Of a DNA stretch of 64,000 nt, positions 33,500 through 54,578 are shown in pieces. Under the pieces are notes generated by a model, which was given only the letters and a program-made list of their open reading frames with translations, was not told the DNA's origin and made no database searches. Position 1 is the stretch's first letter, and every line of letters starts with the position of its first letter. The stretch lies in sequence record PV231354.1. One strand, written 5' to 3'. Made by a program: the position numbers and the translations under genes.

Positions 33500-33718
33500 A
33501 TGAGCTTCCACCGCAGCCCCCTTCCTGGCCCGCCGGAGCAGGCCGACGAGCGCTACAAGTTCATCGACATCGATGGCCGGCGCTACAAGGTCTACCGCTC
33601 GGGTCACGTCTCGGTCCTGATCCAGGGCACGGGCAAGCGGGCCGGCTACACCCGCTCGCTGACCCACAACAGCATCATCGCCGCGCGCGTGCGCTTCGCC
33701 TCGGGGTGGTTCGCATGA
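33500..33718 (+). CDS. hypothetical protein
   Basis: ORF in operon. Confidence 0.65.
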   Translation: MSFHRSPLPGPPEQADERYKFIDIDGRRYKVYRSGHVSVLIQGTGKRAGYTRSLTHNSIIAARVRFASGWFA

Positions 33719-34107: not shown

Positions 34108-34115
34108 GAGGTCCC

Positions 34116-34319
34116 ATGACCAAGTACGTCATCCCCATTCAGGTCGACTTCCTGATCGCGCCCGCCAGGGGCGATGTGATGCAAACCCTGCTGTCGCGGA
34201 TCGAGGCGATCCTGGACGAAGAACTCAGCATCATGCTGAGCGACGCGCCCGACCGGGTCATCGCCCTGAGCCCCGTCAAGGGTCTGCACCAGCGGACCAC
34301 GACGACGGAGGAGACCTGA
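34116..34319 (+). CDS. hypothetical protein
   Basis: GGAGG SD. Confidence 0.7.
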   Translation: MTKYVIPIQVDFLIAPARGDVMQTLLSRIEAILDEELSIMLSDAPDRVIALSPVKGLHQRTTTTEET

Positions 34320-34320
34320 C

Positions 34321-34812
34321 ATGGCCCAGGAATACCAGACCTACACCGTCAAGGGCTCCTGGCCCTTCCCGACCGACATGCTGCGCTACGACGACGCCAA
34401 GCCGGCGACCGTCTTTGCCAGCGAGACGATCAACCGCCTGTCGGGCGACTACGCCCCGTCGCGCGAGAGCATCCGCGACGAGGTCGAAATCAGGCTGATC
34501 CGGATCAAGCGCGGCCTGCCGGCGATCGACCGCTGGGAGTCGTTTGGCTGGAAGGTCGTCAACGGCGACGAGGACACCCAGTACGCGATCGCGGTGCGCA
34601 ACCCGCCGCCGCTGGAACCCACGCCCTACGAGAAGCTGCGCGCGGCGGTCAAGGACGTGATCGCCGAACTCGACTACACGCCCAAGTACGTCTACGCCCG
34701 CGAGGACGACCTGGGCAAGCCCCTACCACCGCGCCTGATGTGCGCGCTGAACGAACTCACCAACACCTACAACGAAACTCCGGAGGCCCGACATGGCAAT
34801 GACCACCCCTGA
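34321..34812 (+). CDS. hypothetical protein
   Basis: GAGGAG SD. Confidence 0.75.
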   Translation: MAQEYQTYTVKGSWPFPTDMLRYDDAKPATVFASETINRLSGDYAPSRESIRDEVEIRLIRIKRGLPAIDRWESFGWKVVNGDEDTQYAIAVRNPPPLEPTPYEKLRAAVKDVIAELDYTPKYVYAREDDLGKPLPPRLMCALNELTNTYNETPEARHGNDHP

Positions 34813-35161
34813 CGGGCGCTACGCCATCGCCGGCTTCACCGGCTGGTCGCCCCAGCACTTCAAGGTCGTCGACCTGGACACCAAGTCCGTCAACGTCAGC
34901 GGCTGGGAAGACGAGGAGCAGGACTTCGCCCTGACGCTGGACGGCGAGCGCTTCTACTACGACGTCATCAAGGCGCGCTTCGCGACCGCCGAGGACGCCG
35001 TGGGCAACCTCACCGCCGCCCAGGAAGCCTACGCGCTCCACGACAAGGAGGTCGAGGCCTTGAGCGAGGAACTGGAAACCCTCAAGCGCAAGCTCGAACT
35101 GGCCGTCTCGGCGCGGGGCCGGGCCTACCGCAAGGCCATGAAGGGCGTCGACCTCGGATGA
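34793..35161 (+). CDS. hypothetical protein, paralogue of 33715..34107
   Basis: GF...PQHFKVVDL. Confidence 0.75.
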   Translation: MAMTTPDGRYAIAGFTGWSPQHFKVVDLDTKSVNVSGWEDEEQDFALTLDGERFYYDVIKARFATAEDAVGNLTAAQEAYALHDKEVEALSEELETLKRKLELAVSARGRAYRKAMKGVDLG

Positions 35162-36332: not shown

Positions 36333-36857
36333 ATGGGCCTGACGGGGTGCAGCTTTGCGCTCCTGACGGCCGGCTCGGTCGCCTTCGCGGTTGACCGTGG
36401 GGGCAGGGCGCTCAAGGCGAGCGGCCTGCTCCTCCTGGCGACCTGGGCGTTCTCGGTGACCGTCGGCAAGGTGCTGGTCGCCGCCTACAAGCCCTACATC
36501 TACGCCTGGGTCGACGGCATGTTCGCCGGCGCCATGGGCGTCATGATCTCCGCCCGCTACCAGCGCTGGCGCGCCGGGCTCTTCGCCCTGGCGATCCTCC
36601 AGATGGGGCTCCATCTGGCCATGCTCGGCTACTGGGATTTCACCCTGGCGGCCCGCCGGCTGCACGTGCTGTCGCTCAACATCACCTACGCCCTGGAACT
36701 CTTCGTGCTCACGATCGGCGCGGTGGTCTACCGCCCTGGCGCGGACGACGATATGCCGGTGATCATGGAGGTCCAGCACCACCTCGTGGGGCAGGACGAC
36801 GGCACGCTGCTCGATTGGCTTGAGTGTGTTGACAAAGCCGGACGGCCCGTCCTATAA
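36333..36857 (+). CDS. multi-pass (~5 TM) membrane protein
   Basis: Several ~20-aa hydrophobic segments. Confidence 0.75.
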   Translation: MGLTGCSFALLTAGSVAFAVDRGGRALKASGLLLLATWAFSVTVGKVLVAAYKPYIYAWVDGMFAGAMGVMISARYQRWRAGLFALAILQMGLHLAMLGYWDFTLAARRLHVLSLNITYALELFVLTIGAVVYRPGADDDMPVIMEVQHHLVGQDDGTLLDWLECVDKAGRPVL

Positions 36858-36885: not shown

Positions 36886-37314
36886 ATGCCGCAGCCCAAG
36901 ACCGCCACGATCTCCCGCGCGCTCGCCTACTTGGCGATCACGGGCGGCACCAACTGCCTCACGATCAACACCCGGATCGCCCTGCACCCCTATCACAAGC
37001 TGGTCCCGGTCACGTACAAGATCGGTGACACCGAACTGACCCGCCACGTCTACAAGCTCACCGACGAGGGCCAAGCCCTGGCCGAGAAGAGCAAGCTCTG
37101 GAAGGGCCACCAGAAGCTCGTCGAGATGGGCTTCAAGTTCCAGGCGCGCCGGCGTCAGTCCTCGCGCTTCCTGTCCTACGATCACGCGACCGACGACTGC
37201 CGCAAGGATCGTCGCGGCGCGTTCATCTCCGGCGACAGCCCCTACGCCCAGCCGGCGCCGGGGCAGACGCCCGAGGGCAAGAAGGACTGGGACTACATCA
37301 AGGTGGAGGTCTAA
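36886..37314 (+). CDS. hypothetical protein
   Basis: Start reassigned to the ATG after the SD. Confidence 0.75.
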   Translation: MPQPKTATISRALAYLAITGGTNCLTINTRIALHPYHKLVPVTYKIGDTELTRHVYKLTDEGQALAEKSKLWKGHQKLVEMGFKFQARRRQSSRFLSYDHATDDCRKDRRGAFISGDSPYAQPAPGQTPEGKKDWDYIKVEV

Positions 37315-37317
37315 GCC

Positions 37318-37704
37318 ATGGCTACCCGCACCGCGTTCGACATCCTCACCGACGCCGCCCACCTGATCGAGCGCAACGGCTGGGCTCAAGGCAAAGCAGT
37401 CCAGGCCGGCCCCGCCGCCGCCGACTGCCCAACCTGCGCCAATCTGGCCCTGGGCGACGCCGCGCGCTTCCGCAGCGAGGTCCTCGGCGCCAACTACCAC
37501 GCCTACCTGGAAGCCCAGGTGGCGCTCCTCAAGTACCTGAAGATCAGCATCGCCCCGGCCCTGCTGAACCAGACCACCAAGGGCTCCCTGATCGTCGACT
37601 GGAACGACGCGCCCGAGCGCACGGCCGCCGAGGTCGTCGCCGCCCTGCGTGGCGCGGCCTACGCCCTGGTGGGTGACGGTCTGGTGGAGGCCAGCCTCGC
37701 ATGA
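37318..37704 (+). CDS. DUF6197-like protein (WNDAPERT motif)
   Basis: LIERNGWAQG...WNDAPERTAAEV. Confidence 0.7.
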   Translation: MATRTAFDILTDAAHLIERNGWAQGKAVQAGPAAADCPTCANLALGDAARFRSEVLGANYHAYLEAQVALLKYLKISIAPALLNQTTKGSLIVDWNDAPERTAAEVVAALRGAAYALVGDGLVEASLA

Positions 37705-37997
37705 TCTGGCAAGGAAGAGCCCTGCGTGTTTCGTTCGGCGACAATCTCGTCGCCGAACTGACCAAGCTGCGCGTACCGCCTTCGACGTTCGGCCTGTCCG
37801 AGACGCCCTCGAAGGACCAGCCGCACATGAAGCTCTACGACGTCTGGGACGTCATGGGCGAGCGTCAATTCCGTGACCTGGGCGTGCCGGCCAATCCTCA
37901 GTACGGGCGCGATGTCAGCGGGATGTGGACGAACGGCGACATGTGGATCACGCCGCAGGAAGCCGCCCAGATCATCGAGCAGAGGAAGCAATCGTGA
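37701..37997 (+). CDS. hypothetical protein
   Basis: ATGA overlap. Confidence 0.7.
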   Translation: MIWQGRALRVSFGDNLVAELTKLRVPPSTFGLSETPSKDQPHMKLYDVWDVMGERQFRDLGVPANPQYGRDVSGMWTNGDMWITPQEAAQIIEQRKQS

Positions 37998-38389
37998 CCG
38001 TCGCTCATGACCTCGCCCGCGCCTGCCGGCTGATCGAAGTCCATGGCTGGGCGCAGGCCCGCCCGGCGGCCGAGCGCAATCCGACCGCCGCGCCGGACGG
38101 CACGATGGCCTACTGCACCACCACGGCGATCCACGAGTCCTGCAAGTTCGAGGGCCGTTCGGACGATCCGCGCTTCGTGATCGGCTACAGCAACCGCGTG
38201 CGCGACTGCTTCGCGGCCGTGCTCGACATCGTCAAGCCCGAGCGCGATCACCTCTTCGACCGCAGCAATCCGATGCTGATCTGGGCCTGGAACGATGCGC
38301 CCGAGCGCACCGCCGACGAGGTCATGGAGACGCTGCACCAAGCCGCCGTCACGATGGCCGACAAACTGGGACTGGGAGACGACGACTGA
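37994..38389 (+). CDS. DUF6197-like protein, paralogue of 37318
   Basis: LIEVHGWAQ...WNDAPERTADEV. Confidence 0.7.
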   Translation: MTVAHDLARACRLIEVHGWAQARPAAERNPTAAPDGTMAYCTTTAIHESCKFEGRSDDPRFVIGYSNRVRDCFAAVLDIVKPERDHLFDRSNPMLIWAWNDAPERTADEVMETLHQAAVTMADKLGLGDDD

Positions 38390-39045
38390 TGACCAGCTAT
38401 GTGACCAACGATTCCGATGGGCGGGCCTACGTGGTCAGTTCGCGCGGGGTGATCCGCAACGGCACGACCGTCGTCATCGTCGCCAAGGACAACCGCGACA
38501 TCGACGGACTGATCGGCGTGCTGGCGGTCGAGCGCGACCGCGAGACCGTCACGGTTCAGGCCGGATGCCGCCACATCCAGGTCGAGCCGGGCATGGTCAG
38601 CGAACTCAAGATGGGCCAGCGCATCGGCGATCCCGAGGCCAACGAGCACCTCGCCCACATCGCCGAGATGGTCGGCGAGGGCGATGACGTGGGCGCGGCC
38701 TGGGAGAGCGTCCAGGCGATCATCACCGAGCGCGACACCCTCAAGGCCGCGATCGATACGGCCCTGGTCCAGATCAGCGGTGGTCTCTGCTACTTCACGG
38801 CCGACGCCAAGCACGCCCAGTTGAAGGACGCCGAGAAGACCCTGGAGCGGGCGCTGAACGGCGGGCAGGCCCCGATCGAAAAGCGCCTCTACGCCGAAGA
38901 ACCGGGCGATGACTGGAGCCTGGAGCTTCACGTCTTCCACGCCGCCAACAACCCCAACCTGCCGGCCGCCACGCGGGAGCTTCTCAAGACCCTGTGGAAG
39001 GCCTATTGCGCCCTGGAACAACGCTGCGAAGGAGCCGCCACGTGA
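38389..39045 (+). CDS. hypothetical protein
   Basis: TGATG overlap. Confidence 0.75.
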   Translation: MTSYVTNDSDGRAYVVSSRGVIRNGTTVVIVAKDNRDIDGLIGVLAVERDRETVTVQAGCRHIQVEPGMVSELKMGQRIGDPEANEHLAHIAEMVGEGDDVGAAWESVQAIITERDTLKAAIDTALVQISGGLCYFTADAKHAQLKDAEKTLERALNGGQAPIEKRLYAEEPGDDWSLELHVFHAANNPNLPAATRELLKTLWKAYCALEQRCEGAAT

Positions 39046-39590
39046 ACATCCTGCAAGACCTCCTCGCCCAGCCCGAGCACATGACCGACGCCTATGCGTC
39101 CTGCATCTCGATGCGCATCGGCGACACCCTGGCCAGCCCCAAGCGCCAGGACCTCTTCGACCTCGCCACCACGCTGACGAGCATCTCCCACGCCATGCTG
39201 GCCCAGGCCCCGCAGGCGACCCGCGACGCCATCATCCACGACAAGGCCGACATGGGCGATCCGATCATGGCCGCCTTCCGCCTGGGGCAACTCTCGATGG
39301 CCGGCGAGATCATGGGCTACGAGGCGACCCGCCGCGCGGACGACGACATAATCGACGTGGTGAAGGCCAACCTCGGCGTGCTCTCCGACATCCGCGAGGG
39401 CCGCAACACGCCGTCGGAACTGGCGATGCAGTTTGGCATGACCGGCAAGGAACTGAAGGTGCTGGTCCGGGTGCTGGAGCACAAGGGCCTCGTCGTTACC
39501 GTCACCAGCAGCACGCCGGGCGTCTACGAGGCGCGCCTGACGCCGCTCGCCCATTCGATCCTCGACATGCTGAAAGAGAAGGCCGCATGA
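39042..39590 (+). CDS. wHTH (MarR/ArsR-like) protein
   Basis: TPSELAMQFGMTGKELKVLVRVLEHKGLV...RLTP. Confidence 0.75.
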   Translation: MNILQDLLAQPEHMTDAYASCISMRIGDTLASPKRQDLFDLATTLTSISHAMLAQAPQATRDAIIHDKADMGDPIMAAFRLGQLSMAGEIMGYEATRRADDDIIDVVKANLGVLSDIREGRNTPSELAMQFGMTGKELKVLVRVLEHKGLVVTVTSSTPGVYEARLTPLAHSILDMLKEKAA

Positions 39591-40192
39591 AGCCGCTCGT
39601 CACCCTTCGCGCCTGCCCGCCGGGCGTCTTCCGCTACGACGGCCTGCTCTTCTGCAAGACCGAGTACGGCACGATCATCGGCCGCAAGGACGCCGTGGAC
39701 AAGCCGCACGTCTACGAGATGACCGACCGCTCGGACGTCTACTGCCTGGGCTCTGGCGAGTATTTCTGGGGCGGCGTCGAGACCGCCGAGGATCGCGAGA
39801 ATCTGATGGTCGAGCCGATCGACATCGCGGCGCTCGACTCCATTGCCGAGACCGACAAGATGGTCCAGGCAATCATGGAGGCGGTGGGCTTTGCCTCGCT
39901 CTACGACAACGGCGCGGGCATGTACGCCCGCAACGTCCTGCGCGCCATCCAGTCGGGCAAGTACGCGGCGTTCGAGGCCCTGCTGCCGCCGCATGTTCCC
40001 AGGGATGGAACGGTGGTCCGCGAGGACCCGCTGAAGATCACCCAGGAGACGCGCGACATCGTCGGCGACGCCTTCGGCACCGTGGCGCTGATCCAGGTCG
40101 AGGACCCCGAGGCCGCGCCCATCACCTTCACCCTGGCCGAGGTCGACGCCCTGCTGACCGCCCAGCGCCGCAAGCTGGAGGCCGACCTGTGA
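39587..40192 (+). CDS. hypothetical protein
   Basis: ATGA overlap. Confidence 0.75.
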   Translation: MKPLVTLRACPPGVFRYDGLLFCKTEYGTIIGRKDAVDKPHVYEMTDRSDVYCLGSGEYFWGGVETAEDRENLMVEPIDIAALDSIAETDKMVQAIMEAVGFASLYDNGAGMYARNVLRAIQSGKYAAFEALLPPHVPRDGTVVREDPLKITQETRDIVGDAFGTVALIQVEDPEAAPITFTLAEVDALLTAQRRKLEADL

Positions 40193-40779
40193 AGCTGGAT
40201 CGCACCCTTTCCGAGGTCGAGTTCCGCGTCCTGACCTATCTGGGTCTGCGCAAGGGCAAGGCCACGACCGTCGGCCAAGTCGCCGCCAATGTGCCGGGGG
40301 CGGGCGGCAAGGCCGGTGAGGTGCTTGAAAGCCTGCGCGATCTGCGCGTGGTGTCCAAGATCGACGCCGAGCACTTCTGGAGCTTCGTGATCCACGAGCG
40401 CGGCGTGGCCTATCTGAAGGGCAAGACCTCCAACGGCGCCAAGAAGCGCAAGAAGGCCCTGCCCCCGACGCCGCTGCTGCATGAGCGGCTCCAGACGATC
40501 CTCGACGAGAGCATCGCCGGCATCGAGCATCCCTCGCAGGTGGCGATCAACGTCTGCGTGCCTCGCGCCGACCTCCAGGAGGCCGTCAGGGGCCTCAAAG
40601 CCCGCGAGGTGTCCACCGGCCTGCCCGAGGACTTCCTGGCCGGCTGGGACGATCTGAGGCGGGCGATCACCGCGATCGAGACGGCGACCCTCCACTCGAT
40701 TGGCGAGGCCACCCGCTGGCTCGAAGAGGAACGCCAGAAGTTTGACACCCTGGTCCGCGACACGGCAAGGAACGCATGA
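40189..40779 (+). CDS. N-terminal wHTH protein
   Basis: LSEVEFRVLTYL...TVGQVA...LESLRDLRVV. Confidence 0.7.
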   Translation: MKLDRTLSEVEFRVLTYLGLRKGKATTVGQVAANVPGAGGKAGEVLESLRDLRVVSKIDAEHFWSFVIHERGVAYLKGKTSNGAKKRKKALPPTPLLHERLQTILDESIAGIEHPSQVAINVCVPRADLQEAVRGLKAREVSTGLPEDFLAGWDDLRRAITAIETATLHSIGEATRWLEEERQKFDTLVRDTARNA

Positions 40780-41102
40780 CCCCCAAGACCTTCATCGATA
40801 AGCTGCGCGTGGGCGCCCAGAAGGCGCTCGCCCGCTCCAAGGCCTGGACGCCCGAGGAGAACATCATTCTCCAGACCCTGGTCTGGGCGCCGGCCAACAT
40901 CCAGAAGCGCTCGGACCTCTACGTAGCCGGCGTCATGCGGGGCATGCTGGCCCTGATCTCGACCATGAGTGGCAAGGTCTCCGAGGAGATCAAGACGCTG
41001 CTCTGGATGGCCGGCGAGGCGACCGAGATCGAAGCGCCCGTCCCGGACGATCAGGTCCAGGCGGCCTTGACCGCGCTCGACGCCCTGCACGCAAGGGGCT
41101 GA
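40776..41102 (+). CDS. hypothetical protein
   Basis: ATGA overlap. Confidence 0.75.
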   Translation: MTPKTFIDKLRVGAQKALARSKAWTPEENIILQTLVWAPANIQKRSDLYVAGVMRGMLALISTMSGKVSEEIKTLLWMAGEATEIEAPVPDDQVQAALTALDALHARG

Positions 41103-41103
41103 C

Positions 41104-41517
41104 ATGCTGTCGCGTTCGGCGCGCCACGCGCAGATGACCGGCAAGACCGACACGCCCGACCTGATTGCGCGAGGCTACTGGCACAAGGGCCAGTGGGTGC
41201 GCAACACCATGGCCAGCCGGCTCAAGGCCTATATCGACCGCGTGCCCGACGTGCGGTTCTTCGAGGACGAGAAGGGCTACTATCCGGGTATCATGCTCGA
41301 CCTGGGCGGCGATCGCTGGAGCATCACGCCGATCACCGGGCGGTTCAAGCGGGACGGCGAGGAAATCCCCGCCCCGCCGTTCTCCGACGTCTCGGCCCGG
41401 CAGTTCAGCCTCGCCCTGATGCGCAAGCTGGAGAAGGAGGGCGCGCTGGTCGCCGCCGTGCTCGACGTGCGCTATGACGGCAAGACGACTGTAGCGCGCT
41501 TTGATCCCGTGACCTGA
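41104..41517 (+). CDS. hypothetical protein, possible member of the wHTH-like array
   Basis: KLEKEGALV. Confidence 0.7.
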   Translation: MLSRSARHAQMTGKTDTPDLIARGYWHKGQWVRNTMASRLKAYIDRVPDVRFFEDEKGYYPGIMLDLGGDRWSITPITGRFKRDGEEIPAPPFSDVSARQFSLALMRKLEKEGALVAAVLDVRYDGKTTVARFDPVT

Positions 41518-41801
41518 TGCCCAAGCTCTGGAACAAGCCCGTCCCGCTGAAGGCCCAGCCGATCCCCTACCAGATCGAGCGCTATCTGCTCAACCACCGC
41601 GACGTGCGGCTGGTGCGCGGACGCGACGGCTGGTTCCGACTCCAGGGCCGCACGGGGGTCAACCACTTCCGCAGCGTGCCAGGGTCGGGGCGCTACTCGG
41701 CGCGCACCGCCATGCTCTGCGTCGACAGCCTGTGTACGGTCGAGTCGTTCGACGAGTGCAATCGGCCCGACGTGATCGGCCTGCATCGGGACGTCATCTG
41801 A
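41517..41801 (+). CDS. wHTH-like array member
   Basis: LCTVESFDECNRP. Confidence 0.7.
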   Translation: MPKLWNKPVPLKAQPIPYQIERYLLNHRDVRLVRGRDGWFRLQGRTGVNHFRSVPGSGRYSARTAMLCVDSLCTVESFDECNRPDVIGLHRDVI

Positions 41802-42166
41802 TGTGGTGCGATCCCAAGGTCCGCGCCCGGCGCCTGATGCTGCCGCGCAACGACGGCAAGGTGCGCTTCAACGGCACCGACTTCCCGTCGCTGATCTGCG
41901 CGGCGACGGCCTCGGTCCTGCTCGACAAGATGTGGAAGAGCTTTGACCAGCACCCGATCCTGCTGCGGCGGTCCGACGGCGATTTCGACCTCGACTGCGA
42001 TCCCATCGGCCTGGAGGAGGACCGGCTGACGTTCGAGGCCGACATCGTGATCTCCCGGCGCATCGCCATGAACTTGGTCGAACTGGGCTACCTACTCGTC
42101 GTGACGAGCACCGAGCGCGGCGCGCCCCAGCGCCTGGAAGTGGCCGACGTGCCGAGGCGGACCTGA
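41801..42166 (+). CDS. wHTH-like array member
   Basis: LVELGYLLVVTSTERGAP. Confidence 0.7.
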   Translation: MWCDPKVRARRLMLPRNDGKVRFNGTDFPSLICAATASVLLDKMWKSFDQHPILLRRSDGDFDLDCDPIGLEEDRLTFEADIVISRRIAMNLVELGYLLVVTSTERGAPQRLEVADVPRRT

Positions 42167-42447
42167 TGGCGAGGTCCCGTGTACGCGTCAGGATCACCCA
42201 GCTTCGCTACCTGGAGGTGCGTGCGAAACTCCAGCGCGGGCCGTGGAAGCATCTGATCCGCGCCTATCGCGGCTGGCGCTGCTACAATCCCGCCACCGGC
42301 ACGACCGATATGGCCGAGCGCTACAGCGACGACACGGTGCGGCGCATGGTCGCAAGCGGGACGCTGGACGTCCACGAGTTCGACGAGGACGGCGTGGTCC
42401 AGGTCTATCGCCTGGGCAAGGCCTTCGACGGCTGGAGGTCGTCATGA
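42166..42447 (+). CDS. wHTH-like array member
   Basis: MVASGTLDVHEFDEDGVVQVYRL. Confidence 0.7.
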   Translation: MARSRVRVRITQLRYLEVRAKLQRGPWKHLIRAYRGWRCYNPATGTTDMAERYSDDTVRRMVASGTLDVHEFDEDGVVQVYRLGKAFDGWRSS

Positions 42448-42797
42448 AGTACAAGTGGATGGCCAACCCCTACTACGCCCAGATAGGGTTCTCGCCCCAT
42501 CAGGCGCGCTACTGGGACGTCGAGAAAGCCATGGTCCTCAACCTGTGGGACGACATCGGCCGCGTCGGCGGGCTCGAAGACCCCAGCCACTGGAAGCTTG
42601 TCTGGAGGCCCTTGCAAGTGGGCCGCGAAGGGCGATATGTCCTGGTCACCGCCCAGGCTGGAATCGCCTACCCCATGGCGTACCCAAAGGGCTATCGCGG
42701 CGCGATCGTGGAGATCGCCGCCGATGAGGACTGCCGGCTGCGGCCGACGGTGCGGGACGAGACCGGGCGGATTCTGGAGTATCGGGGCGTCCAGTGA
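42444..42797 (+). CDS. wHTH-like array member
   Basis: LRPTVRDETGRILEYR. Confidence 0.7.
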   Translation: MKYKWMANPYYAQIGFSPHQARYWDVEKAMVLNLWDDIGRVGGLEDPSHWKLVWRPLQVGREGRYVLVTAQAGIAYPMAYPKGYRGAIVEIAADEDCRLRPTVRDETGRILEYRGVQ

Positions 42798-43417
42798 AGA
42801 GCGATTGGCGCGAGACCTTGGCGGCGGCGTTCGACCGGCCCCTCCCCGTGGAGGAGCCGGTGGCGGACCCCTATGCCTTCGATCCCAACGCGCCGCCGCT
42901 GATCCTCGACCTCACCCCGGACGAGAAGCTGTCGCTGACCGAGTACCGCTGGGCGGCGCTGGACGCGTCGGGCGCGGTCATGGGCGAATTCTGGGCGATC
43001 TCCCAGGCGGCCGAGGCGCTCGCCACCTTCCTCTACCCAGGCTTGGCCAGCTACGCGCGCGGCGGGCACACCGGCCGGCTCAAGGCCAACCGCCTGCGCC
43101 GGCTGAGCGAGGCCCAGAACTGGCGCTGCTGCTACTGCCATGGGCAGATGCGCATGCCCCACGACTGCGACGGCCCCAACGAGCCGGACATGGCGACGCT
43201 GGAGCACGTCACCCGCGTCACCGATGGCGGTGGTAGCACCTGGGACAACCTGATCGCCGCCTGCCAGACCTGCAACTCCCATCGCGGGAGCGTCATGCCC
43301 CTGAAGTGGTGGAAGCTGCGCCAGAAGCTCCTCCCCGATTGGCCGGCCTGCTCGCCGATCACCGACGCGGCCCGCTACGCCCTGCGCGGCTATGGGCTCT
43401 TGCGGCGCGGGTGGTGA
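42794..43417 (+). CDS. HNH endonuclease
   Basis: CCYC...TLEHV...GG...NLIAACQTCNSHRG. Confidence 0.88.
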   Translation: MKSDWRETLAAAFDRPLPVEEPVADPYAFDPNAPPLILDLTPDEKLSLTEYRWAALDASGAVMGEFWAISQAAEALATFLYPGLASYARGGHTGRLKANRLRRLSEAQNWRCCYCHGQMRMPHDCDGPNEPDMATLEHVTRVTDGGGSTWDNLIAACQTCNSHRGSVMPLKWWKLRQKLLPDWPACSPITDAARYALRGYGLLRRGW

Positions 43418-43463
43418 CAACCGTTTTTGGTTGTAAAGTGAGTTCACAACCTTTTTCGGTTGT
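43417..43463. promoter_or_regulatory. two 18-bp palindromic operator-like sites
   Basis: ACAACC-N6-GGTTGT at 43417-43434 and 43446-43463. Confidence 0.65.
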
Positions 43464-43475
43464 AGCGCGACTGTG

Positions 43476-43530
43476 TTGACGAGGTAACGAAAGCGGACTA
43501 AATGTAGGGCCTCGACGACAACGAAGGAGA
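43476..43530 (+). promoter_or_regulatory. sigma70-type promoter + conserved leader
   Basis: TTGACG-N17-TAAATG; motif at 43513. Confidence 0.75.
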
Positions 43531-43536
43531 CCCCGC

Positions 43537-43725
43537 ATGCCTAAGACCTGCGTCAAGATGGGCGATCTTGGCCTCGGCTGGTACGCCAGCAGCTACAGCG
43601 ACGACTCGATGACCGTGCGCAATCCCGAGAAGGGCCTGCGCATCGACCTGGAGTCCGAGAGCGTCGAGCGCCTGCGCCAGTTCTTCGCCCAGGCCAAGGC
43701 CGAAGCCGCCGGGCGCGCCGCATGA
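43537..43725 (+). CDS. hypothetical protein
   Basis: AAGGAG SD. Confidence 0.75.
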   Translation: MPKTCVKMGDLGLGWYASSYSDDSMTVRNPEKGLRIDLESESVERLRQFFAQAKAEAAGRAA

Positions 43726-43931
43726 CGGCGATCGGCGCGGTCTTCACCTACTTCATGTTCTTCTGCTTCCTGCTGGTCCTGGCCTGCCTGATCGAGCGCG
43801 ACGGCGACTACACGCCGCCCGACAAGGCCGAGAAGCTGTCGCTGCCGGTGATCGTCCTGCTGGCGATCGTCGCGGGCGCCGCCACCATGGGGCTGGCCTG
43901 GGCGATCCGCTATCATCGGGGCTTTTGGTGA
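43722..43931 (+). CDS. small 2-TM membrane protein
   Basis: Two hydrophobic helices. Confidence 0.7.
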   Translation: MTAIGAVFTYFMFFCFLLVLACLIERDGDYTPPDKAEKLSLPVIVLLAIVAGAATMGLAWAIRYHRGFW

Positions 43932-44392
43932 CCTCGCACGTCTCGCTCAAGAAGGTGACCACCGGCTTTGGCCTGACGCCCTCGGCGATCCCCGGTGTGA
44001 CGATCGTCCTGCCGACGATTTCGCAGGTCATCCACCCGCGCATCCAGGCCCGCATCGACAAGCTGACCCTCCAGTACAAGCAGGCCAAGGACCGCGCCCG
44101 CCGGCGCCAGAGCTTCAAGCTCCAGGCCCTGCTTGACGAGACGCTGCCGGGCAAGGTGGTCTTCCACCGCACCGCCGGGGGTTTCTACAAGGCCGACTTC
44201 ACCGGCACGGTGGAAGAATTTCAGGCCATGAGCCGGCTGCTGCTGCATCCGCTCTTCCTCCACGCCTGGGGCATCCGCTCGCTCAAGCCGCTGATCGCCG
44301 ACGGCGCCCTGGTGGTCGAGGCGATGGACGAATACTGCCGGCCGTTGACCGTGCGCTTCGTCGACAACATCTGGACCTATGATGACGCGTAA
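43928..44392 (+). CDS. wHTH-like array member
   Basis: LIADGALVVEAMDEYCRP. Confidence 0.7.
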   Translation: MTSHVSLKKVTTGFGLTPSAIPGVTIVLPTISQVIHPRIQARIDKLTLQYKQAKDRARRRQSFKLQALLDETLPGKVVFHRTAGGFYKADFTGTVEEFQAMSRLLLHPLFLHAWGIRSLKPLIADGALVVEAMDEYCRPLTVRFVDNIWTYDDA

Positions 44393-44762
44393 GCGCAAGT
44401 TGACGGTGATCAAGAAGGGCCGGCGCCTCACCGAAGTGGAGAGCGGGGTCACGGTCACCGAGGCCGAGGCCACGGTGATCGGCCTGCTCGCGCGCGGCAC
44501 GCGCCTGAAGTTCGTCGACCTGGGCGACGACGGCTATTATCGGGTCCACTCGCTCTGCACGGCCGATCTCCAGAAGATGATGCAGGGCGAGCGATCCGGT
44601 GCCCGTGTCTACTGCTACACCACGCGCTTTGCCCGGCCCACGATCGACAGCCTCGTCGCCACCGGCTGGCTGGCGCCGGTGCTCTCCGACGAGAACGGCC
44701 GGCCGCAGATGCTGGTCGCGCCGGGGCTGGCCGGCGCGTTTCTCCAGGAGATGTTCGCTTGA
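44379..44762 (+). CDS. wHTH-like array member
   Basis: LVATGWLAPVLSDENGRP. Confidence 0.7.
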   Translation: MMTRKRKLTVIKKGRRLTEVESGVTVTEAEATVIGLLARGTRLKFVDLGDDGYYRVHSLCTADLQKMMQGERSGARVYCYTTRFARPTIDSLVATGWLAPVLSDENGRPQMLVAPGLAGAFLQEMFA

Positions 44763-45073
44763 AGCGACTCCAGCCTCACGTCCGTCTCGTCCTGCTGGTC
44801 CAGAAGATGGGCTACGCCACCACCGAGCCGCTGCTGCGTCGCGAGGCGCGCGGCTGGATCGTCACCTCGGCCGCCCGCGTGGTCGGGCGCTTCCGGGCCT
44901 ATGACGCCGAGCCGGGCCTGACGTTTAACCCGCTGGAAGCCACGGGCTTTGCGTTCTCCACGATCGAGCAGGCGATCCGGTACGAGCGGCTGAAGATCGA
45001 GCCCAGCGCCTGGAACCAGCACAAGCGGCCGATCGAGTACCGCATCACCGACTACTTTGGGTCCGGCCGATGA
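44759..45073 (+). CDS. wHTH-like array member
   Basis: IEPSAWNQHKRPIEYRI. Confidence 0.7.
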   Translation: MKRLQPHVRLVLLVQKMGYATTEPLLRREARGWIVTSAARVVGRFRAYDAEPGLTFNPLEATGFAFSTIEQAIRYERLKIEPSAWNQHKRPIEYRITDYFGSGR

Positions 45074-45402
45074 GCAGCGCCATCCACAAGCTTCGCTCCC
45101 TGTTCGACCTGATCCAGAAGAGCTACCCGACGGCCGAGATCAGGCTGGAGCAGCAGGGCGGCGACGCCTACCGCGTGAAGATCGTCGAGTATGACGGCGC
45201 CGCGCGCGTCGGCTTCTACAGCGACCGCCTCGGCCAAGCCTTCACCCGCGAACTCGTCACGCCCGGCTTGCAGCGCCAGGGCGCGCGCTATCGCATCGGC
45301 ACGGTGCGCGAGGCGCTCAAGCGCTGGCCCACCGCCGTGCTCACGCCGACGGCCTGGAACGAGTCGCTCAAGCCCATCGACTACCGGCTGCTGCTCGCAT
45401 GA
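45070..45402 (+). CDS. wHTH-like array member
   Basis: LTPTAWNESLKPIDYRL. Confidence 0.7.
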   Translation: MSSAIHKLRSLFDLIQKSYPTAEIRLEQQGGDAYRVKIVEYDGAARVGFYSDRLGQAFTRELVTPGLQRQGARYRIGTVREALKRWPTAVLTPTAWNESLKPIDYRLLLA

Positions 45403-45731
45403 GATCGGCCGGCGCCCAGTTCCTCGACGTGATCAACGCGATCGGGCTCTACCCGTCTGAGACGGCCAAGCTGCTCCACGTCGAGGGCGACCGCTTCGTC
45501 CTGGAGGTCCCGCGCCGCGAGCGCTGGACGATCGGGGGCGACTACGGCTATGTCGCCCTGAACCCGCAGGGGCGTGTCGTGTACGCGGCACACCCTGCGC
45601 TGGCCAAGCCCTGGCGCCGGCGCACGTTCGAAGAGGCGGTGCGCACCTCGCCCGGCTGGCTGGCCCTGGAGGTCACCGCGCGCGATCAGAACCTCACCCC
45701 GGTCGGCTACACGTTGAGGGCGGTGCGATGA
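45399..45731 (+). CDS. wHTH-like array member
   Basis: LEVTARDQNLTPVGYTL. Confidence 0.7.
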   Translation: MRSAGAQFLDVINAIGLYPSETAKLLHVEGDRFVLEVPRRERWTIGGDYGYVALNPQGRVVYAAHPALAKPWRRRTFEEAVRTSPGWLALEVTARDQNLTPVGYTLRAVR

Positions 45732-46141
45732 AGCGCAAGATCAAGGTCCCCAGGTACACCCAATTCGAGCGCGCCTATCGGGCGCTCCTGATCCTGTCCC
45801 AGGACTATGCCGACCAGCCCTGTGACGGGTTCCCCGGCCGCGTCACGCTGGAGCGCCGCGAGTTCGGGCGCTGGGTGTTCCTTTGGGACAACCTGCCGAT
45901 GTGGGTCAACAACGACGCGGGCATGGTGCTGGTCGCGCGCGCCGAATTCGGCAAGCCGATCGCCCACTTCACCACCAAGACCGTGCGGACCATGATCCTG
46001 GCCTCGCGCGGTACGGTGCGCGCCTACGACGGCGACGCCTATTCCACGCGCCAGCCGCTGGGGCTGCTGCTGCCCGAGGCCTGGGACCAACAGGCGCGCG
46101 TGATCTGCTATCGGGTCTTGCCCCTCTCGGTGACTCTCTAG
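45728..46141 (+). CDS. wHTH-like array member
   Basis: LLPEAWDQQARVICYRV. Confidence 0.7.
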   Translation: MKRKIKVPRYTQFERAYRALLILSQDYADQPCDGFPGRVTLERREFGRWVFLWDNLPMWVNNDAGMVLVARAEFGKPIAHFTTKTVRTMILASRGTVRAYDGDAYSTRQPLGLLLPEAWDQQARVICYRVLPLSVTL

Positions 46142-46153
46142 TAAGGCTTCATT

Positions 46154-46507
46154 ATGAGCCTGAAAACCCTCCGCCCCGATCCTGAAGAGCGCGCCGCGCT
46201 CACCGAATTCTTCCGCACCACGCGCCTGTCGTGGATCATCCTGCCTGCCTCGGCCAAGCACTTCGTGGTGCGCCGCCTGGGCAAGGACGACGACATCAAG
46301 CGGTTCCTGAAGTTCATCGGCCACAAGGTGGTCGAGACTGGCGAGGGCCGGCCGACGTGGTTCCACATCGAAGACCTGGGCGACGCGCTGATGACGAACG
46401 CCGCGCGCGGCGACCTGACCGACCGCATCGGCGCCAACGGCTGGGGCTACGCAATCTTCGCGCCCGTGCCGCACGATGACGCGATTGACGACCGTCGTGA
46501 CGCTTGA
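46154..46507 (+). CDS. hypothetical protein
   Basis: ORF in operon. Confidence 0.7.
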   Translation: MSLKTLRPDPEERAALTEFFRTTRLSWIILPASAKHFVVRRLGKDDDIKRFLKFIGHKVVETGEGRPTWFHIEDLGDALMTNAARGDLTDRIGANGWGYAIFAPVPHDDAIDDRRDA

Positions 46508-46688
46508 CATCCGCAGGGCGGTCTATTAACCCTCTTCCCCGACATTAACAGTATGCGAGAAATTGAGGTCTAGGGCGCCGCTTACCCGGCTCCCCGCCTG
46601 CGCAGCCCCCAGACCCTGGAAGGGTGTCGCCCGGAGGCGCCGTAGGCGAACGCCGAAAATTTTTCGATACAAGAGGGGAAATATACCA

Positions 46689-47807
46689 ATGCCCAAGGGT
46701 CCCGTGCTCGACAAGTTCGTCAAGGGCAAGCGCTACAGCCAGCGGGAGTTCCTGCGCCTCGTCCTGGACACCGTCACGGCCATCACCGCCCTGCCGACCT
46801 ACGAGCGGGGATGCCGCGCCCGCGACGTCGCCGAGCGCTTTGGTGATCCGGCCTGGGGCGAGCGCGATAATCTCCAGATCATCGCCGTCACCCTCAACAA
46901 CCTGAAGAACCGCAACTACGTCCGCTCCCCCGAGCGCGGCCTGTTCCTGGTCAACGAGGGCAAGGCCAGCCTGGGCCTGGACGTGCAGGAGCAGATCGAG
47001 ATCGCCGTCGCCGACGTGCTCACCGCGCAGGGCGGCTACGGCCGGCGCAAGGTGATCGACGTCGCCATGGGGGCCGAGCGGTGGTCCAAGGAGCAGGTGA
47101 CGATCAACCGCGTCATCAACCAGAACGACCGCATCCGCCGCGACTACAAGGGCATGGCCTACGCGCTCTACAACCTCGCGCCCGAGGAACTCGCCCTGCT
47201 GCCCCAGCAGGGTCGGTGGCTGCATCTCCAGTCGGCCGCCGGCCTGCGGATGATCACCGGCAAGCCCACCCACGACATCTACAATCTGATCGAGAAGGCC
47301 GCCCGCCAGCAGTACCGCAACATCGGGGCGATCTTCCGGCTGGTGCTCGACCACATCGACGAGGAGTTCGTCGACGGCCTGGAGAACGACGACGACCTGC
47401 ACGACGCCATGAAGGCCTACACGCGCGCCTTCTCCGACATCGACTCGGCCGCGAAGCGGCTTATCGAGGAGCGCTACGGCCCGGCCGGCGACAAGTTCAC
47501 CGCCCTCCAGCAGAAGGGCTGGTCGCTCGACGAGATCGACACCGCCCGGCGCGACGCCCTGCTCGACTACGATCGCGACGCCCCGCTGCGGCTGATCGAC
47601 CTCTTCTGTGAGGGGGACGCCCATGCGCACGAGCGCGCGCCGATCGCCTTCTATGAGGCCTTCGCCAAATGGGCCGGGCTGGACGCGCCGGCGCTCAGCC
47701 GGGGCATCATCATGGCCGACCTGTCGCGGATCAAGCGGATGAGCAAGCTGGACGCCCTCGAAGACGGGCCGCTGCCTGGGTATGAGGACGCCGCGCCGGC
47801 CGAGTAG
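46689..47807 (+). CDS. protein with tandem wHTH-like N-terminus (possible replication initiator)
   Basis: RARDVAERF...LNNLKNRNYV...GLF; GAGGGG SD; start reassigned. Confidence 0.65.
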   Translation: MPKGPVLDKFVKGKRYSQREFLRLVLDTVTAITALPTYERGCRARDVAERFGDPAWGERDNLQIIAVTLNNLKNRNYVRSPERGLFLVNEGKASLGLDVQEQIEIAVADVLTAQGGYGRRKVIDVAMGAERWSKEQVTINRVINQNDRIRRDYKGMAYALYNLAPEELALLPQQGRWLHLQSAAGLRMITGKPTHDIYNLIEKAARQQYRNIGAIFRLVLDHIDEEFVDGLENDDDLHDAMKAYTRAFSDIDSAAKRLIEERYGPAGDKFTALQQKGWSLDEIDTARRDALLDYDRDAPLRLIDLFCEGDAHAHERAPIAFYEAFAKWAGLDAPALSRGIIMADLSRIKRMSKLDALEDGPLPGYEDAAPAE

Positions 47808-47820
47808 GGCTGGCCGGCCC

Positions 47821-48060
47821 CTACTCACTATAGGTCAAATGTGTACCCATATGTGTAAGCATGTTAATATACCTGTATGGGCATGCCACCCCTCCTATAC
47901 TTCTCCCTAGTCATTTGTGTATAACTATATAATACACTCTTATTATAACACACCATCTACTCACATTAATAACCAACTTTTAGATATATAGATACTTCTC
48001 CTTAGATGGGGGGTATAGAGAGGAGAAAATGAGCAGGATTGAGGGCTAGAAGTTTAATAG
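47821..48060. other. AT-rich non-coding island (candidate origin unwinding element)
   Basis: Hand count 88/240 G+C (~37%) in an otherwise high-GC window. Confidence 0.6.
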
Positions 48061-48298: not shown

Positions 48299-48327
48299 TT
48301 GACAGTCGTGGTTAACGACGCTAGATG
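48299..48327 (+). promoter_or_regulatory. sigma70-type promoter without the conserved leader
   Basis: TTGACA-N17-TAGATG. Confidence 0.6.
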
Positions 48328-51845: not shown

Positions 51846-54578
51846 ATGACCTTCTATCCCATGGAGGACCGGGCCAAGGCTCGCTCCGTCGTCACCAACC
51901 TGCTGGACCTCCAGCGCGAAGCCGTCAAGGTGGGCCGTCAAGGGCTGATCCTGCCGCCCGAGCGCAAGCAGTTGATCACCCAGTTGACCGAGACCGAGGA
52001 TCACACCCGCTGGGTGGACCTCTTGGGTCAGTTCGCCGATCGCGTCCAGACCGATCACCTCTCGCGCCTGAAGCCGATCGCCAAGGACGACTTCAACGCC
52101 TTCTGCGAGTACGTCAACCCCGACGAGCCGCCGGCCTCCAAGTGGCACGTCTTCCTGACCGGCACGCTCCAGGAGATCGAGAACAACCCCGAGCTTGAGC
52201 GCTTCGTGCTCAACTGCCCGCCGGGCCACGCCAAGCCGCTGGACGTCGACACCGAAGTGCTGATGGCTGATGGCGCCTGGAAGCGTCTGGGCGACATCCA
52301 GGTGGGCGACTACGTGGTGGGCGAGAGCGGCGCGCGCTGCAAGGTCACCGCCGTCCATGAGCAGGGCGACCTCGACACCCTGAAGATCACCACCGCCCAC
52401 GGCCGGCAGATCATCGCCGCGCCCGACCACTCGTTCCGGGTCGGTGACGGCTGGAAGCCGGCCGACAAGCTGCGCCCCGGTGACGCCCTGTCCGTCGTCG
52501 GCGCCGCCAACCTCAACTACGACGCCAGCGGCAAGTCGATCGACCACTTCGAGCTTGCCGCCTACCTCCAGGCCAAGGGCGGGCGCTCCTACTTCCACCG
52601 CGTCCACAAGAGCGGGCCGAAGACCTACCGCAACGTCTATCTGTGGACGTCCGACCACCGCGAGGCCAGCCAGATCAGCACGTGCCTCAAGCGCATGGGC
52701 GTGGCCTTCAAGGGGCGGCTGGCCAAGACCGAGAAGGTCTGGAAGATGCGCCTCTCGACCGAGTGGGGCGACGCCCTGGCCGAGGAGTACGGCCTGGACG
52801 CCAAGATCGACGCGCGTCGTGTTCCGGCCTTTGTCACGAAAGGCGACGAGGAGCAGATCGGCCGCTACCTGTCGACCCTGACCTCGCTGGCCGGCGAAGC
52901 TCCCGAGCGCTACACCATCCCGCGTCTGGTGCTCTACTTCAAGAACCCCGACTTCGCCACCGACGTCCAGCGCCTGTTCGCCGCCGTCGGCGTCAACGCG
53001 CGCATCGAGCCGCGCAAGACCGGTCGCACCCGGCTGCACATCTCCGGCGCCGATCTCGAAGCCTACTTCGCCGCCGGCCTGACCTACACCGGCCCCAACG
53101 CCGACAAGCTGCCGGCCAAGCGCGCGGCGTTCCCGACCGCGCCCTCGACGCTGGCCGATCACGTCACCTGGATCGAGCCGCATGGGGTGCGCCCCTGCCG
53201 CTGCCTGACGGTCGAGAACGAGCACACCTTCATCGCCCAGGGCGTGGTGGTCCACAACTCGACCTACGCCTCGCGCCTGTTCGTGGCGTGGCGCCTGGGC
53301 CGCGATCCGCGCCAGAAGATCATCGGCGGCGGCCACTCCCAGCGCTTCGTCGAGAACGAGTTCAGCGGCAAGATTCGCAACCTCGTGCGCACGCCCCAGT
53401 TCAAGGACGTCTTCCCCGGCGTGGTCATCGACCATGCCACCTCGGCTAAGGACATGTGGGCGATCGCCGGGCACGGCGGGCAGTACGCCGCCAAGGGCGC
53501 CGGTCAGGCCATCCACGGTCTGCGCGCCAACTTCGTCTGCGTCGATGACCCCTATCCGTCGATCCAGAAGGCCGAGAGCGGGGCCTACCGCGAGGAAGTC
53601 CGCACGTGGTTCTTCGGTGACGTTGGCTCGCGTCTGTTGCCGCTCGCTAAAGTATTCCTCATCATGACGCGCTTTCATGAGGAAGATTTGACGGGTACCA
53701 TCCTCAAGTACAACCAAGACGCACTTGTGGAGTCTGACCGTTACCACATCGTCGAAGCGCCTGCTCTGTGTTACGACCCCGAGAACGACGTCCTCGGCAG
53801 GGCGCTCGGCGAAGTTTTGTGGGACTACTATGACTTGCATTACTTCAAACGGAAGCGCTCCGAGTGGAAGTACCAAAGATTTGCTTTGGTTTATCAACAA
53901 CTTGCGGACGCGGCCTCGGACACGTCGATCGCGTCCAAGTTCCAGACCTACCAGCACCTGCCGCACCTGGACCCGAAGGTCCTCAAGGCGCGCATGGACG
54001 CGGGGCATGTTGACGATCGCGGCCGGCCGATCCCGGACCGCAAGGAGCACTTCCGCCGCATCGTGACCTCGGTCGACGCGGCCCAGAAAAAGGGCGCGCG
54101 CAACGACTACACGGTCGTCCAGGTGTGGGGCGAGACCCACGATCGCAAGCACTACCTGATCTACCAGGAGCGCAAGAAGGTCGAGATCAACGACCTGATC
54201 GAGATGGTCGAGCGCATCTCCAAGCGCTTCGACGTCGACTCCATCCTGGTCGAGGACAAGGGCAACGGCACGGCCTACATCCAGGCGCGGGGCCAGACCG
54301 ACAACCAGCGGCGGCTCGCGCCGGCCCCGATCGAGGCGATCCAGGTCCCCAGCACCTACTCCAAGGAGTTCCGCTTCAACGAGGTCATCCCGATGATCGA
54401 GGCCCAGGAGGTCTACCTGCCCGACAAGGCGCCGTGGCTCGACCTCTTCATCCGCGAAGTCGGGCAGTTCCCCGAAGGCGCCCACGATGACCAAGTCGAC
54501 GCCATGACGCAGTACCTCCGCTGGGCCAAGTCCAAGCGCACGCGGTTCGGCGCGCGCAAGGTCGGCTCGATGGGCTGA
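51846..54578 (+). CDS. terL: terminase large subunit (intein-interrupted)
   Basis: Walker A PPGHAK|ST split by the intein; Walker B-like VCVDDP; nuclease SVDAA..., NDYT, VEDK, HDDQVDAMTQ. Confidence 0.93.
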   Translation: MTFYPMEDRAKARSVVTNLLDLQREAVKVGRQGLILPPERKQLITQLTETEDHTRWVDLLGQFADRVQTDHLSRLKPIAKDDFNAFCEYVNPDEPPASKWHVFLTGTLQEIENNPELERFVLNCPPGHAKPLDVDTEVLMADGAWKRLGDIQVGDYVVGESGARCKVTAVHEQGDLDTLKITTAHGRQIIAAPDHSFRVGDGWKPADKLRPGDALSVVGAANLNYDASGKSIDHFELAAYLQAKGGRSYFHRVHKSGPKTYRNVYLWTSDHREASQISTCLKRMGVAFKGRLAKTEKVWKMRLSTEWGDALAEEYGLDAKIDARRVPAFVTKGDEEQIGRYLSTLTSLAGEAPERYTIPRLVLYFKNPDFATDVQRLFAAVGVNARIEPRKTGRTRLHISGADLEAYFAAGLTYTGPNADKLPAKRAAFPTAPSTLADHVTWIEPHGVRPCRCLTVENEHTFIAQGVVVHNSTYASRLFVAWRLGRDPRQKIIGGGHSQRFVENEFSGKIRNLVRTPQFKDVFPGVVIDHATSAKDMWAIAGHGGQYAAKGAGQAIHGLRANFVCVDDPYPSIQKAESGAYREEVRTWFFGDVGSRLLPLAKVFLIMTRFHEEDLTGTILKYNQDALVESDRYHIVEAPALCYDPENDVLGRALGEVLWDYYDLHYFKRKRSEWKYQRFALVYQQLADAASDTSIASKFQTYQHLPHLDPKVLKARMDAGHVDDRGRPIPDRKEHFRRIVTSVDAAQKKGARNDYTVVQVWGETHDRKHYLIYQERKKVEINDLIEMVERISKRFDVDSILVEDKGNGTAYIQARGQTDNQRRLAPAPIEAIQVPSTYSKEFRFNEVIPMIEAQEVYLPDKAPWLDLFIREVGQFPEGAHDDQVDAMTQYLRWAKSKRTRFGARKVGSMG
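52236..53258 (+). mobile_element. 341-aa intein with degenerate LAGLIDADG domain
   Basis: PLDVDTEVLMADG...APDH...RCLTV..HTFIAQGVVVHN|S. Confidence 0.9.

Follow-up and report, generated by a model that had tools for sequence, protein, structure and literature searches.

Are the short, closely spaced hypothetical genes at positions 41104-46141 of a 64,000-nucleotide (nt) stretch of Caulobacter phage RBC8 DNA related to one another, and what might their products do? The stretch (hereafter, the window) corresponds to nucleotides 159271-223270 of record PV231354.1 and forms the terminal 64,000 nt of that record. RBC8, a giant siphophage of the phiCbK type, belongs to the genus Poindextervirus in the subfamily Dolichocephalovirinae; over the array region compared (window 40000-47900), it shares ~100% identity with CcrRogue. 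An initial annotation of the window had proposed that ten of these genes encode highly diverged paralogs that end in a common, winged-helix-like motif. Our analyses showed that the array forms a single multigene family, specific to the phiCbK-like lineage of Caulobacter phages, with about 11 tandem members of about 90-155 amino acids (aa) and one outlier in RBC8/CcrRogue. Genes are designated here by the window position at which they start.

The array genes constitute one multigene family

The ten motif strings were all present, each at the C-terminus of its own plus-strand gene, and the positions that had been assigned to them are the starts of ten annotated genes, except that 43928 should read 43925. 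The T[VI]xx[LM][VI]xxGxL helix pattern and the LxRxxxG hairpin pattern described upstream of the motif were also found. The motif was retained in the orthologs of phiCbK, Magneto, CcrBL10, and BL57, despite identities of 27-69% to the window copies.

Proteins encoded in the 22-kb syntenic regions of RBC8 and these four relatives (five phages in all) were grouped into 47 ortholog families, and the family profiles were compared all-against-all with hhalign (1081 pairs), 13 of the families making up the candidate set. Of the 15 best pairs, 14, including the first ten, fell inside the candidate set (hypergeometric p = 5e-16), and the 15th-best pair of the 1081 involved 23740. Ten families (42166, 42444, 43925, 44379, 44759, 45070, 45399, 45728, and the extra copies of phiCbK and BL57) each had a partner within the set at an expectation value (E) between 5e-8 and 2.4e-4, as compared to 0.0018-0.046 for the best matches outside it. 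The 44759 family matched the phiCbK slot-8 family over 80 columns (95% probability, E = 5e-8), 42166 matched 44379 (88%, E = 2.8e-6), and 42444 matched 44759 (84%, E = 7e-6). For 45070, the partners were BL57_14378 (88% over 81 columns) and 44759 (74%), and for 45399 they were BL57_14378 (60%) and 45070 (51% over 83 columns). Lower probabilities were obtained for 45728 against 42444 (47%, 72 columns) and for 43925 against 45399 (44%) and 44379 (40% over 69 columns). The 41517 family was linked to that of 42166 at E = 1.2e-3, and 41801 was linked to 44379 at E = 1.5e-3 and to the 23740 profile at 55% probability. Gene 41104, which the initial annotation had not listed, has a C-terminal helix and hairpin that align with the family, and its best E within the set (0.008) was no better than background.

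Hidden Markov models (HMMs) built with one family left out at a time were searched against 285 real proteins together with reversed and shuffled decoys (a database of 1995 sequences). Eight of 11 families, the same eight window families named above, were recovered above all real non-members and decoys, at E values of 1e-3 to 1e-8. The values were 1e-8 to 6e-5 for 42166, 1e-5 to 2e-7 for both 44379 and 45399, ~1e-6 for 45070, 5e-6 to 3e-4 for 44759, and 7e-5 to 1e-3 for 45728. Most orthologs of 42444 were recovered, the window copy only by a model of the C-terminal 60 aa; orthologs of 43925 were recovered down to E = 1e-6, the window copy scoring 0.01-0.03, which is about the level of the best non-member. 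Recovery was marginal for 41517 and 41801, and 41104 was not recovered.

A BLAST single-linkage network of the five phages agreed with the hhalign network, in that the cross-family partners of array genes at E < 0.01 were array genes or 23740 and nothing else. Its links included 41517 with the 42166 family (E ~3e-4 over ~80 aa, the full length) and the phiCbK ortholog of 42444 with the slot-8 copy of BL10 (E = 8e-5). The similarity found by hhalign extended over 35-83 aligned columns and the homology therefore covers most of each ~100-aa protein. The family proposed on the basis of the 16-aa C-terminal motif is real, and its similarity is not limited to that motif.

The paralogy is hidden because BLAST is nearly blind to it, PHROGs splits it, Pfam does not contain it, and the DNA repeats are weak. 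Within the window alone, the best BLAST cross-pair had an E of 0.001 (database of 112 proteins). Eight of the ten members scanned were assigned to eight different PHROGs and the other two to none, and scans of members and of the family profile against Pfam, NCBIfam, and PDB sequences gave no meaningful match; no named family was returned for any member by the Pfam, NCBIfam, or PHROG scans. At the DNA level, weak matches of 20-30 nt were all that was found across the array, in agreement with the earlier statement that no repeat is obvious. The description of the array as a hidden, expanded, and diversified paralogous family thus proved correct. Its paralogy lies hidden at about 20% identity, yet is recoverable from the ortholog profiles of five genomes.

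A six-frame HMM scan of the whole window returned a single additional match, 23740 (E = 0.013), all others having E > 0.4. The C-terminal ~60 residues of this protein are the family domain and are joined to its N-terminal region by a Gly-rich, low-complexity linker. When a profile was built from four orthologs, the five best matches of the domain were all array families, among them that of 42166 (90% probability, E = 1.8e-6), which identifies 23740 as the distant member that had been suspected from its C-terminus. The locus looks fragmented in BL57, where a 72-aa gene of its own, preceded by several very short ORFs (open reading frames), is annotated for the 23740 domain.

Members fall into two loose subgroups, A and B (Table 1), that are bridged by the match of 43925 to 45399 (E = 2.4e-4). 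The closest relatives within the array tend to be neighboring genes, as expected under tandem duplication. The family most likely arose by repeated tandem duplication, after which the copies diverged beyond recognition by ordinary BLAST.

As had been anticipated, relatives differ in the number of copies they carry (9 to 11). RBC8 and BL10 have 11 copies, BL57 has ~10-11, and phiCbK, Magneto, and Karma have 9, the last two copies (45399 and 45728) being absent from these three phages. In BL57, one copy is truncated and another is apparently split over two reading frames, and in BL10 the annotation of the 42166-type copy covers no more than 47 aa at the C-terminal end. Members were recovered from phiCbK-like Caulobacter phages and a few environmental contigs and from no other source. 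No members were present in the 18.7-kb region upstream of the resolvase gene of CcrColossus or in two IMG/VR loci, and a search of metagenome, genome, and IMG/VR collections anchored on the conserved neighboring gene 40776 yielded nothing beyond phages already known and the end of one contig. When 1.84 billion representatives were searched with the family profile, orthologs and three adhesin-like proteins with immunoglobulin (Ig)-like repeats were recovered, and nothing else. We found no description of the family in Pfam, PHROGs, NCBIfam, or PDB, or in the literature searched on phiCbK and Caulobacter.

Predicted fold of the family domain

One member of each subgroup was modeled with AlphaFold2 from alignments of window paralogs and database orthologs. 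The model of 42166 (predicted local distance difference test score, pLDDT, 84; predicted template modeling score, pTM, 0.72) consists of a helix (residues 2-24), two strands (29-33 and 36-41), a second helix (55-64), and two further strands (67-72 and 78-83). In the model of 45070 (pLDDT 76, pTM 0.69), a helix (2-18) and two strands (23-30 and 33-40) are followed by an extra hairpin, a helix (76-83), and two strands (90-96 and 102-108). The core common to both is a helix, a hairpin, a variable insert, a helix, and a hairpin. Each member is accordingly predicted to be essentially one compact α+β domain that begins with a long N-terminal helix. In the models, the 16-aa motif corresponds to the second helix and second hairpin, and the LxRxxxG pattern to the first hairpin. 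Duplication of one helix-hairpin half to give the other was considered and rejected (hhalign score 6.6, as compared to 5.0 ± 0.9 for column-shuffled controls).

Foldseek searches of the BFVD database with the 42166 model support a common predicted fold. Models were placed in families by size, source phage, and identity rather than by direct sequence comparison; on that basis, the top eleven matches include models of the 42166, 41517, 43925, 44379, 44759, and 23740 families. Independent models of at least five other member families matched that of 42166 at E values of 1e-3 to 5e-2. The CcrSwift counterpart of 41517, assigned by size and 27% identity, matched at E = 9.6e-4 with a root-mean-square deviation (rmsd) of 2.1 Å, the 44379 family matched through K4K4Z9 and A0A385E9Z9, and 43925 matched through its inferred BL10 and phiCbK orthologs. 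A 191-aa model, equal in length to phiCbK gp153 (D865_gp153 of NC_019405, the ortholog of 23740), gave E = 1.6e-3 and a template modeling (TM) score of 0.64, and the model assigned to the 45070 family matched weakly (E = 0.21). Taken as a whole, the models predict that members share a three-dimensional fold. Weaker BFVD matches to the 42166 model were small, uncharacterized proteins of Brucella, Vibrio, and T1-like phages.

Searches of PDB with both models gave nothing significant, the best matches having E values of 0.24-0.34 and TM scores no higher than 0.42. The only relevant results were short, local, non-significant helix-hairpin matches to the winged-helix domains of NRC2, DnaD-N, and ORC/Cdc6, and there was a low-scoring global match to ScpB.

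Charge, conservation, and gene organization

Ten of the 11 window members are basic, with isoelectric points (pI) of 8.7-10.3, the median for 100 other proteins of the window being 5.8. When orthologs were included, the median pI was 9.7 for 48 family sequences and 5.7 for 237 non-members (Mann-Whitney p = 5e-12), and several members carry Arg/Lys-rich N-terminal stretches. Conservation across the 48 sequences (42166 numbering) was concentrated in the hydrophobic core and one hairpin turn: position 53 is aromatic in 90% of sequences, positions 58, 61, 62, and 67 are aliphatic in 90-100%, positions 73 and 74, at the turn, are D/E/N/Q in 94% and 81%, respectively, and position 77 is R/K in 62%. 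None of the conserved columns looks catalytic.

Between RBC8 and BL10, the ratio of non-synonymous to synonymous substitution rates (dN/dS) was 0.17-0.54 for 10 of 11 members, the same level as in neighboring genes. These are therefore real, constrained genes under purifying selection. At slot 44759, RBC8 and CcrBL10 (L009 13735-14007) are 37% identical, as compared to 79-91% for the other array genes, and dN/dS is about 1.2 and saturated, which suggests either replacement of a cassette or a hot spot of divergence. Relative to phiCbK, array genes of RBC8 are 27-69% identical and flanking genes mostly 55-92%.

Consecutive genes of the runs 36886-43417 and 43537-46141 abut or overlap by 1-14 nt (Table 1). 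Between 41104 and 46141, 11 of 13 junctions overlap by 1-14 nt and one is a 119-nt gap; a 12-nt gap follows the last member. A host-type promoter-like pattern, TTGAC-N15-18-CTANAW, was derived from the invariant columns of a site alignment across phages and occurs eight times in the window, as compared to 0.13 expected. All copies are sense-oriented, are located at or within one of the few gaps between genes of the long co-directional block, and appear to divide this block into operons. In the copy at 43476, which heads the downstream block, the key bases do not vary among four phages. Before this copy stands a tandem, AT-rich palindrome (ACAACC-N6-GGTTGT), separated by 12 nt from the -35-like TTGACG; the palindrome has no other occurrence in the window (0 expected) and is invariant in BL10, phiCbK, and Magneto. 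As an RNA, the palindrome folds no more strongly than shuffled sequences (z = -1.1); judging from sequence, the pair is possibly an operator or a hairpin element.

The HNH endonuclease gene between the two blocks occupies the same position in all five phages compared, and the two small genes at the head of the downstream operon have neither a family signal nor a Pfam match.

Table 1. Family members, interspersed genes, and regulatory-like sites in the window (the small plus-strand genes of the run are annotated as hypothetical)
Feature	Coordinates	Strand	Length (aa)	pI	Subgroup	Remarks
Upstream block, possible member	41104-41517	+	137	9.5		Absent from the initial annotation's list
Upstream block, member	41517-41801	+	94	9.8	B	
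Upstream block, member	41801-42166	+	121	5.8	B	Only acidic member
Upstream block, member	42166-42447	+	93	10.2	B	Near-minimal domain; modeled
Upstream block, member	42444-42797	+	117	8.7	A	
HNH endonuclease gene, non-member	42794-43417	+				Between the two blocks; Pfam HNH, E = 1e-7, above curated cut-off
Palindrome ACAACC-N6-GGTTGT, two copies	43417-43434, 43446-43463					Directly after the HNH stop codon
Small gene, non-member	43537-43725	+	62			Head of downstream operon
Small gene, non-member	43722-43931	+	69			Head of downstream operon; hydrophobic
Downstream block, member	43925-44392	+	155	9.7	B	N-terminal extension
Downstream block, member	44379-44762	+	127	9.5	B	
Downstream block, member	44759-45073	+	104	10.3	A	
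Downstream block, member	45070-45402	+	110	9.9	A	Modeled
Downstream block, member	45399-45731	+	110	9.9	A	
Downstream block, member	45728-46141	+	137	9.8	A	
Outlying distant member	23740-24354	+	204		B	
Promoter-like site	3907-3934	-				
Promoter-like site	9368-9395	+				
Promoter-like site	12458-12485	+				
Promoter-like site	17722-17750	+				
Promoter-like site	32973-33000	+				
Promoter-like site, host-type	36829-36857	+				Heads the gap-free run 36886-43417, including the upstream block
Promoter-like site, host-type	43476-43503	+				Heads the downstream block, genes 43537-47807
Promoter-like site	48299-48326	+				

Directly downstream of the array, a 372-aa gene (46689-47807) aligned at 38% identity with its BL10 counterpart (L009 15302-16432) in a global codon alignment, with a dN/dS of ~1.1. 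These values may reflect either real divergence or misalignment. An upstream TTG at 46563 would extend this gene to 414 aa. Farther downstream, the CcrRogue annotation assigns an intein to the large terminase gene (record 211446-214178; approximately window 51846-54578), and the ~10.3-kb terminal repeat of CcrRogue starts within the 3' part of this gene, at record position 213400.

Possible roles of the family

Our preferred reading, held tentatively and judged to be slightly less likely than not, is that the array encodes small early proteins, restricted to this lineage, that bind nucleic acid and have diversified in their targets. The strong positive charge, together with conservation that is confined to a core and a turn and is not catalytic, points to binding of DNA or RNA. 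Since the operons start at host-type promoter-like sites, they are probably transcribed by the host RNA polymerase, and probably early in infection. The members would be cytoplasmic proteins, produced from two translationally coupled operons, that bind DNA or RNA; their variable surfaces and inserts would give each paralog a different target, and their role may be in host takeover or in early regulation of phage genes. The initial annotation had viewed the family as nucleic-acid- or protein-binding effectors, such as anti-defense or host-takeover variants. Binding without enzymatic activity fits the conservation, and nucleic acid as the ligand fits the charge, whereas no evidence was found for anti-defense.

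Several observations weigh against this reading. The acidic pI of 41801 departs from the pattern, and among polar positions, conservation is highest for acidic residues in the turn of the hairpin. A basic charge by itself is also compatible with other roles, such as that of packaged internal proteins. Searches of Pfam, NCBIfam, PDB, and Foldseek gave no significant match to a known nucleic-acid-binding family or structure, and the alignments supplied to AlphaFold were shallow (27-29 rows, mostly paralogs). As to the extent of the family, the statistics are weaker for 41517 and 41801, and membership of 41104 is borderline and not established.

Alternatively, the proteins may be protein-binding inhibitors, directed against host defenses, the host RNA polymerase, or cell-cycle regulators, whose paralogs track different or fast-evolving targets. 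We consider this unlikely, though worth serious attention. It would account for the faster evolution of array genes than of their neighbors relative to phiCbK, for the variable copy number, and for the divergence of slot 44759 between two phages that are otherwise ~85% identical; the genes also probably lie in an early accessory region, and no DNA-binding family was matched in Pfam. The uniformly high pI, on the other hand, is better suited to nucleic-acid binding, and dN/dS at the level of neighboring genes gives no whole-gene sign of diversifying selection. Nor was a link to anti-defense obtained, as the Pfam, NCBIfam, and PHROG scans, whose libraries lack anti-defense families, gave no named family.

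A bolder version of the nucleic-acid-binding proposal, which we regard as rather improbable, holds that the domain is an undescribed helix-hairpin-helix-hairpin fold that binds nucleic acid, the second half of the fold imitating the recognition helix and the wing found in winged helix-turn-helix (wHTH) domains. About a dozen specificity variants, expressed from host-type promoters, would then reprogram Caulobacter transcription or RNA metabolism as infection begins, and the Brucella, Vibrio, and T1-like phage proteins would be remote structural relatives.

That members are canonical wHTH transcription factors, too diverged to be detected by sequence, seems to us quite improbable. The label 'winged-helix-like' was apt insofar as the last helix and hairpin resemble a recognition helix and wing; the proteins are basic, the short Foldseek matches to NRC2, DnaD-N, and ORC/Cdc6 (30-46 columns, rmsd 2-5 Å) fall in this part, and, outside the family, subgroup B has its best profile match in the wHTH region of the neighboring gene 39042. 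The helix-turn-helix that the label implies is missing from both models, however, which have a β-hairpin where helices 2 and 3 would begin. The winged-helix matches are not significant (Foldseek E ≥ 0.34; hhalign E = 0.015, 3% probability), and no wHTH Pfam family was matched at E ≤ 5 among the 29 members scanned. Among five other window genes that had been named as classical wHTH genes, 25398 and 39042 gave sub-threshold wHTH hits in Pfam and 19154, 21976, and 40189 gave none.

We give similarly little credence to the idea that these are basic DNA-condensing or internal proteins tied to packaging, either packaged alongside the DNA or forming a coat on it. This would be in keeping with their high pI and with the location of the array, which precedes the co-directional Holliday-junction resolvase and terminase genes by 2-6 kb. 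The promoter-like site at 48299 and a 600-nt gap nevertheless separate the array from the packaging genes, and eleven diverged paralogs are not expected of a bulk DNA-coating role. In addition, no gp29x, gp30x, or gp311 is named in the main text of the paper on the genome and virion proteome of phiCbK, although the numbering there was not compared with that of GenBank.

Finally, a chance or compositional likeness of unrelated, high-GC ORFs would agree with the weak BLAST signal within the window (in a tiny database) and with the scores of the family profile against unrelated, archaeal-type Ig-repeat adhesins, which show the hairpin motif alone to be non-specific, but this explanation is largely refuted, and in our view barely credible, given the within-set enrichment across 1081 profile pairs, the leave-one-out recovery above shuffled, reversed, and real controls, alignments of up to 83 columns, and predicted folds that are concordant and cross-match in BFVD.

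Some three quarters of the proteins of phiCbK lack matches beyond this group of phages (PMC3556154). In the array, a dozen unexplained genes are reduced to one family with one predicted fold, and so to a single tractable problem, and the family is a new entry for resources of the Pfam and PHROG type. If its members are early nucleic-acid binders, as we tentatively propose, they are candidates for the means by which a much-studied model phage takes over a model cell-cycle bacterium. A nucleic-acid-binding function would also mean that the fold enlarges the small set of DNA- or RNA-binding modules that are not helix-turn-helix.

Comparison with known systems

Like the family, wHTH domains (e.g., the MarR/HxlR-like 39042) are small and basic and have a helix followed by a β-hairpin 'wing', with Gly and hydrophobic residues at the helix-strand junction. 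In the 42166 and 45070 models, the wing directly follows the putative recognition helix, as in wHTH domains. The three-helix bundle with its helix-turn-helix, in contrast, is lacking; the models have two helices, the first of which carries a hairpin of its own. No significant match to a wHTH family was obtained from Pfam (E ≤ 5), a PDB profile search, or Foldseek against PDB.

The family profile scores on 4-8 Ig-like repeats (Big_3_5, CarboxypepD_reg) in each of the three adhesin-like proteins (P0013, P0017, P0019), with summed E values of 2e-13 to 3e-5. Homology to these adhesins was rejected: no member matches the corresponding Pfam families, and Ig-like repeats are all-β sandwiches, whereas the phage proteins are predicted to be α+β with confident helices. 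The scores arise because a similar hairpin (strand, acidic turn, Gly/Pro, strand) adds up over the repeats. As this case illustrates, repeats can inflate whole-sequence HMM scores.

The C-terminal 'double-wing' domain of T4 MotA is a small, early, DNA-binding phage domain in which helices alternate with β-hairpins. MotA was absent from the top 50 matches listed for either Foldseek search of PDB, and a resemblance to it is unsupported. A Roseobacter phage RDJL Phi 1 protein of the GafA type (Pfam DUF6456) weakly resembles the 42166 model (TM 0.59, 87 columns). GafA is a regulator of alphaproteobacterial gene transfer agents that binds DNA and RNA polymerase (PMC9638019). The Foldseek match is not significant (E = 0.17) and no member matches DUF6456 at E ≤ 5; this model-based likeness is offered as a lead only.

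Closest at hand are the other paralog sets of the window (37318/37994, 38389/39587, and 33715/34793; regions 37318-38389, 38389-40192, and 33715-35161), which likewise consist of small, tandem or nearby hypothetical genes of this co-directional block that are confined to phiCbK-like phages. These sets have 2-3 copies and are detectable by BLAST (E = 2e-7 for the 37318/37994 pair), whereas the family described here has 11-12 copies that have moved past both BLAST and PHROG clustering. Large phages are well known to carry expanded families of small early proteins. The kind of family is thus already known, while this family, with its apparently unmatched fold, is new.

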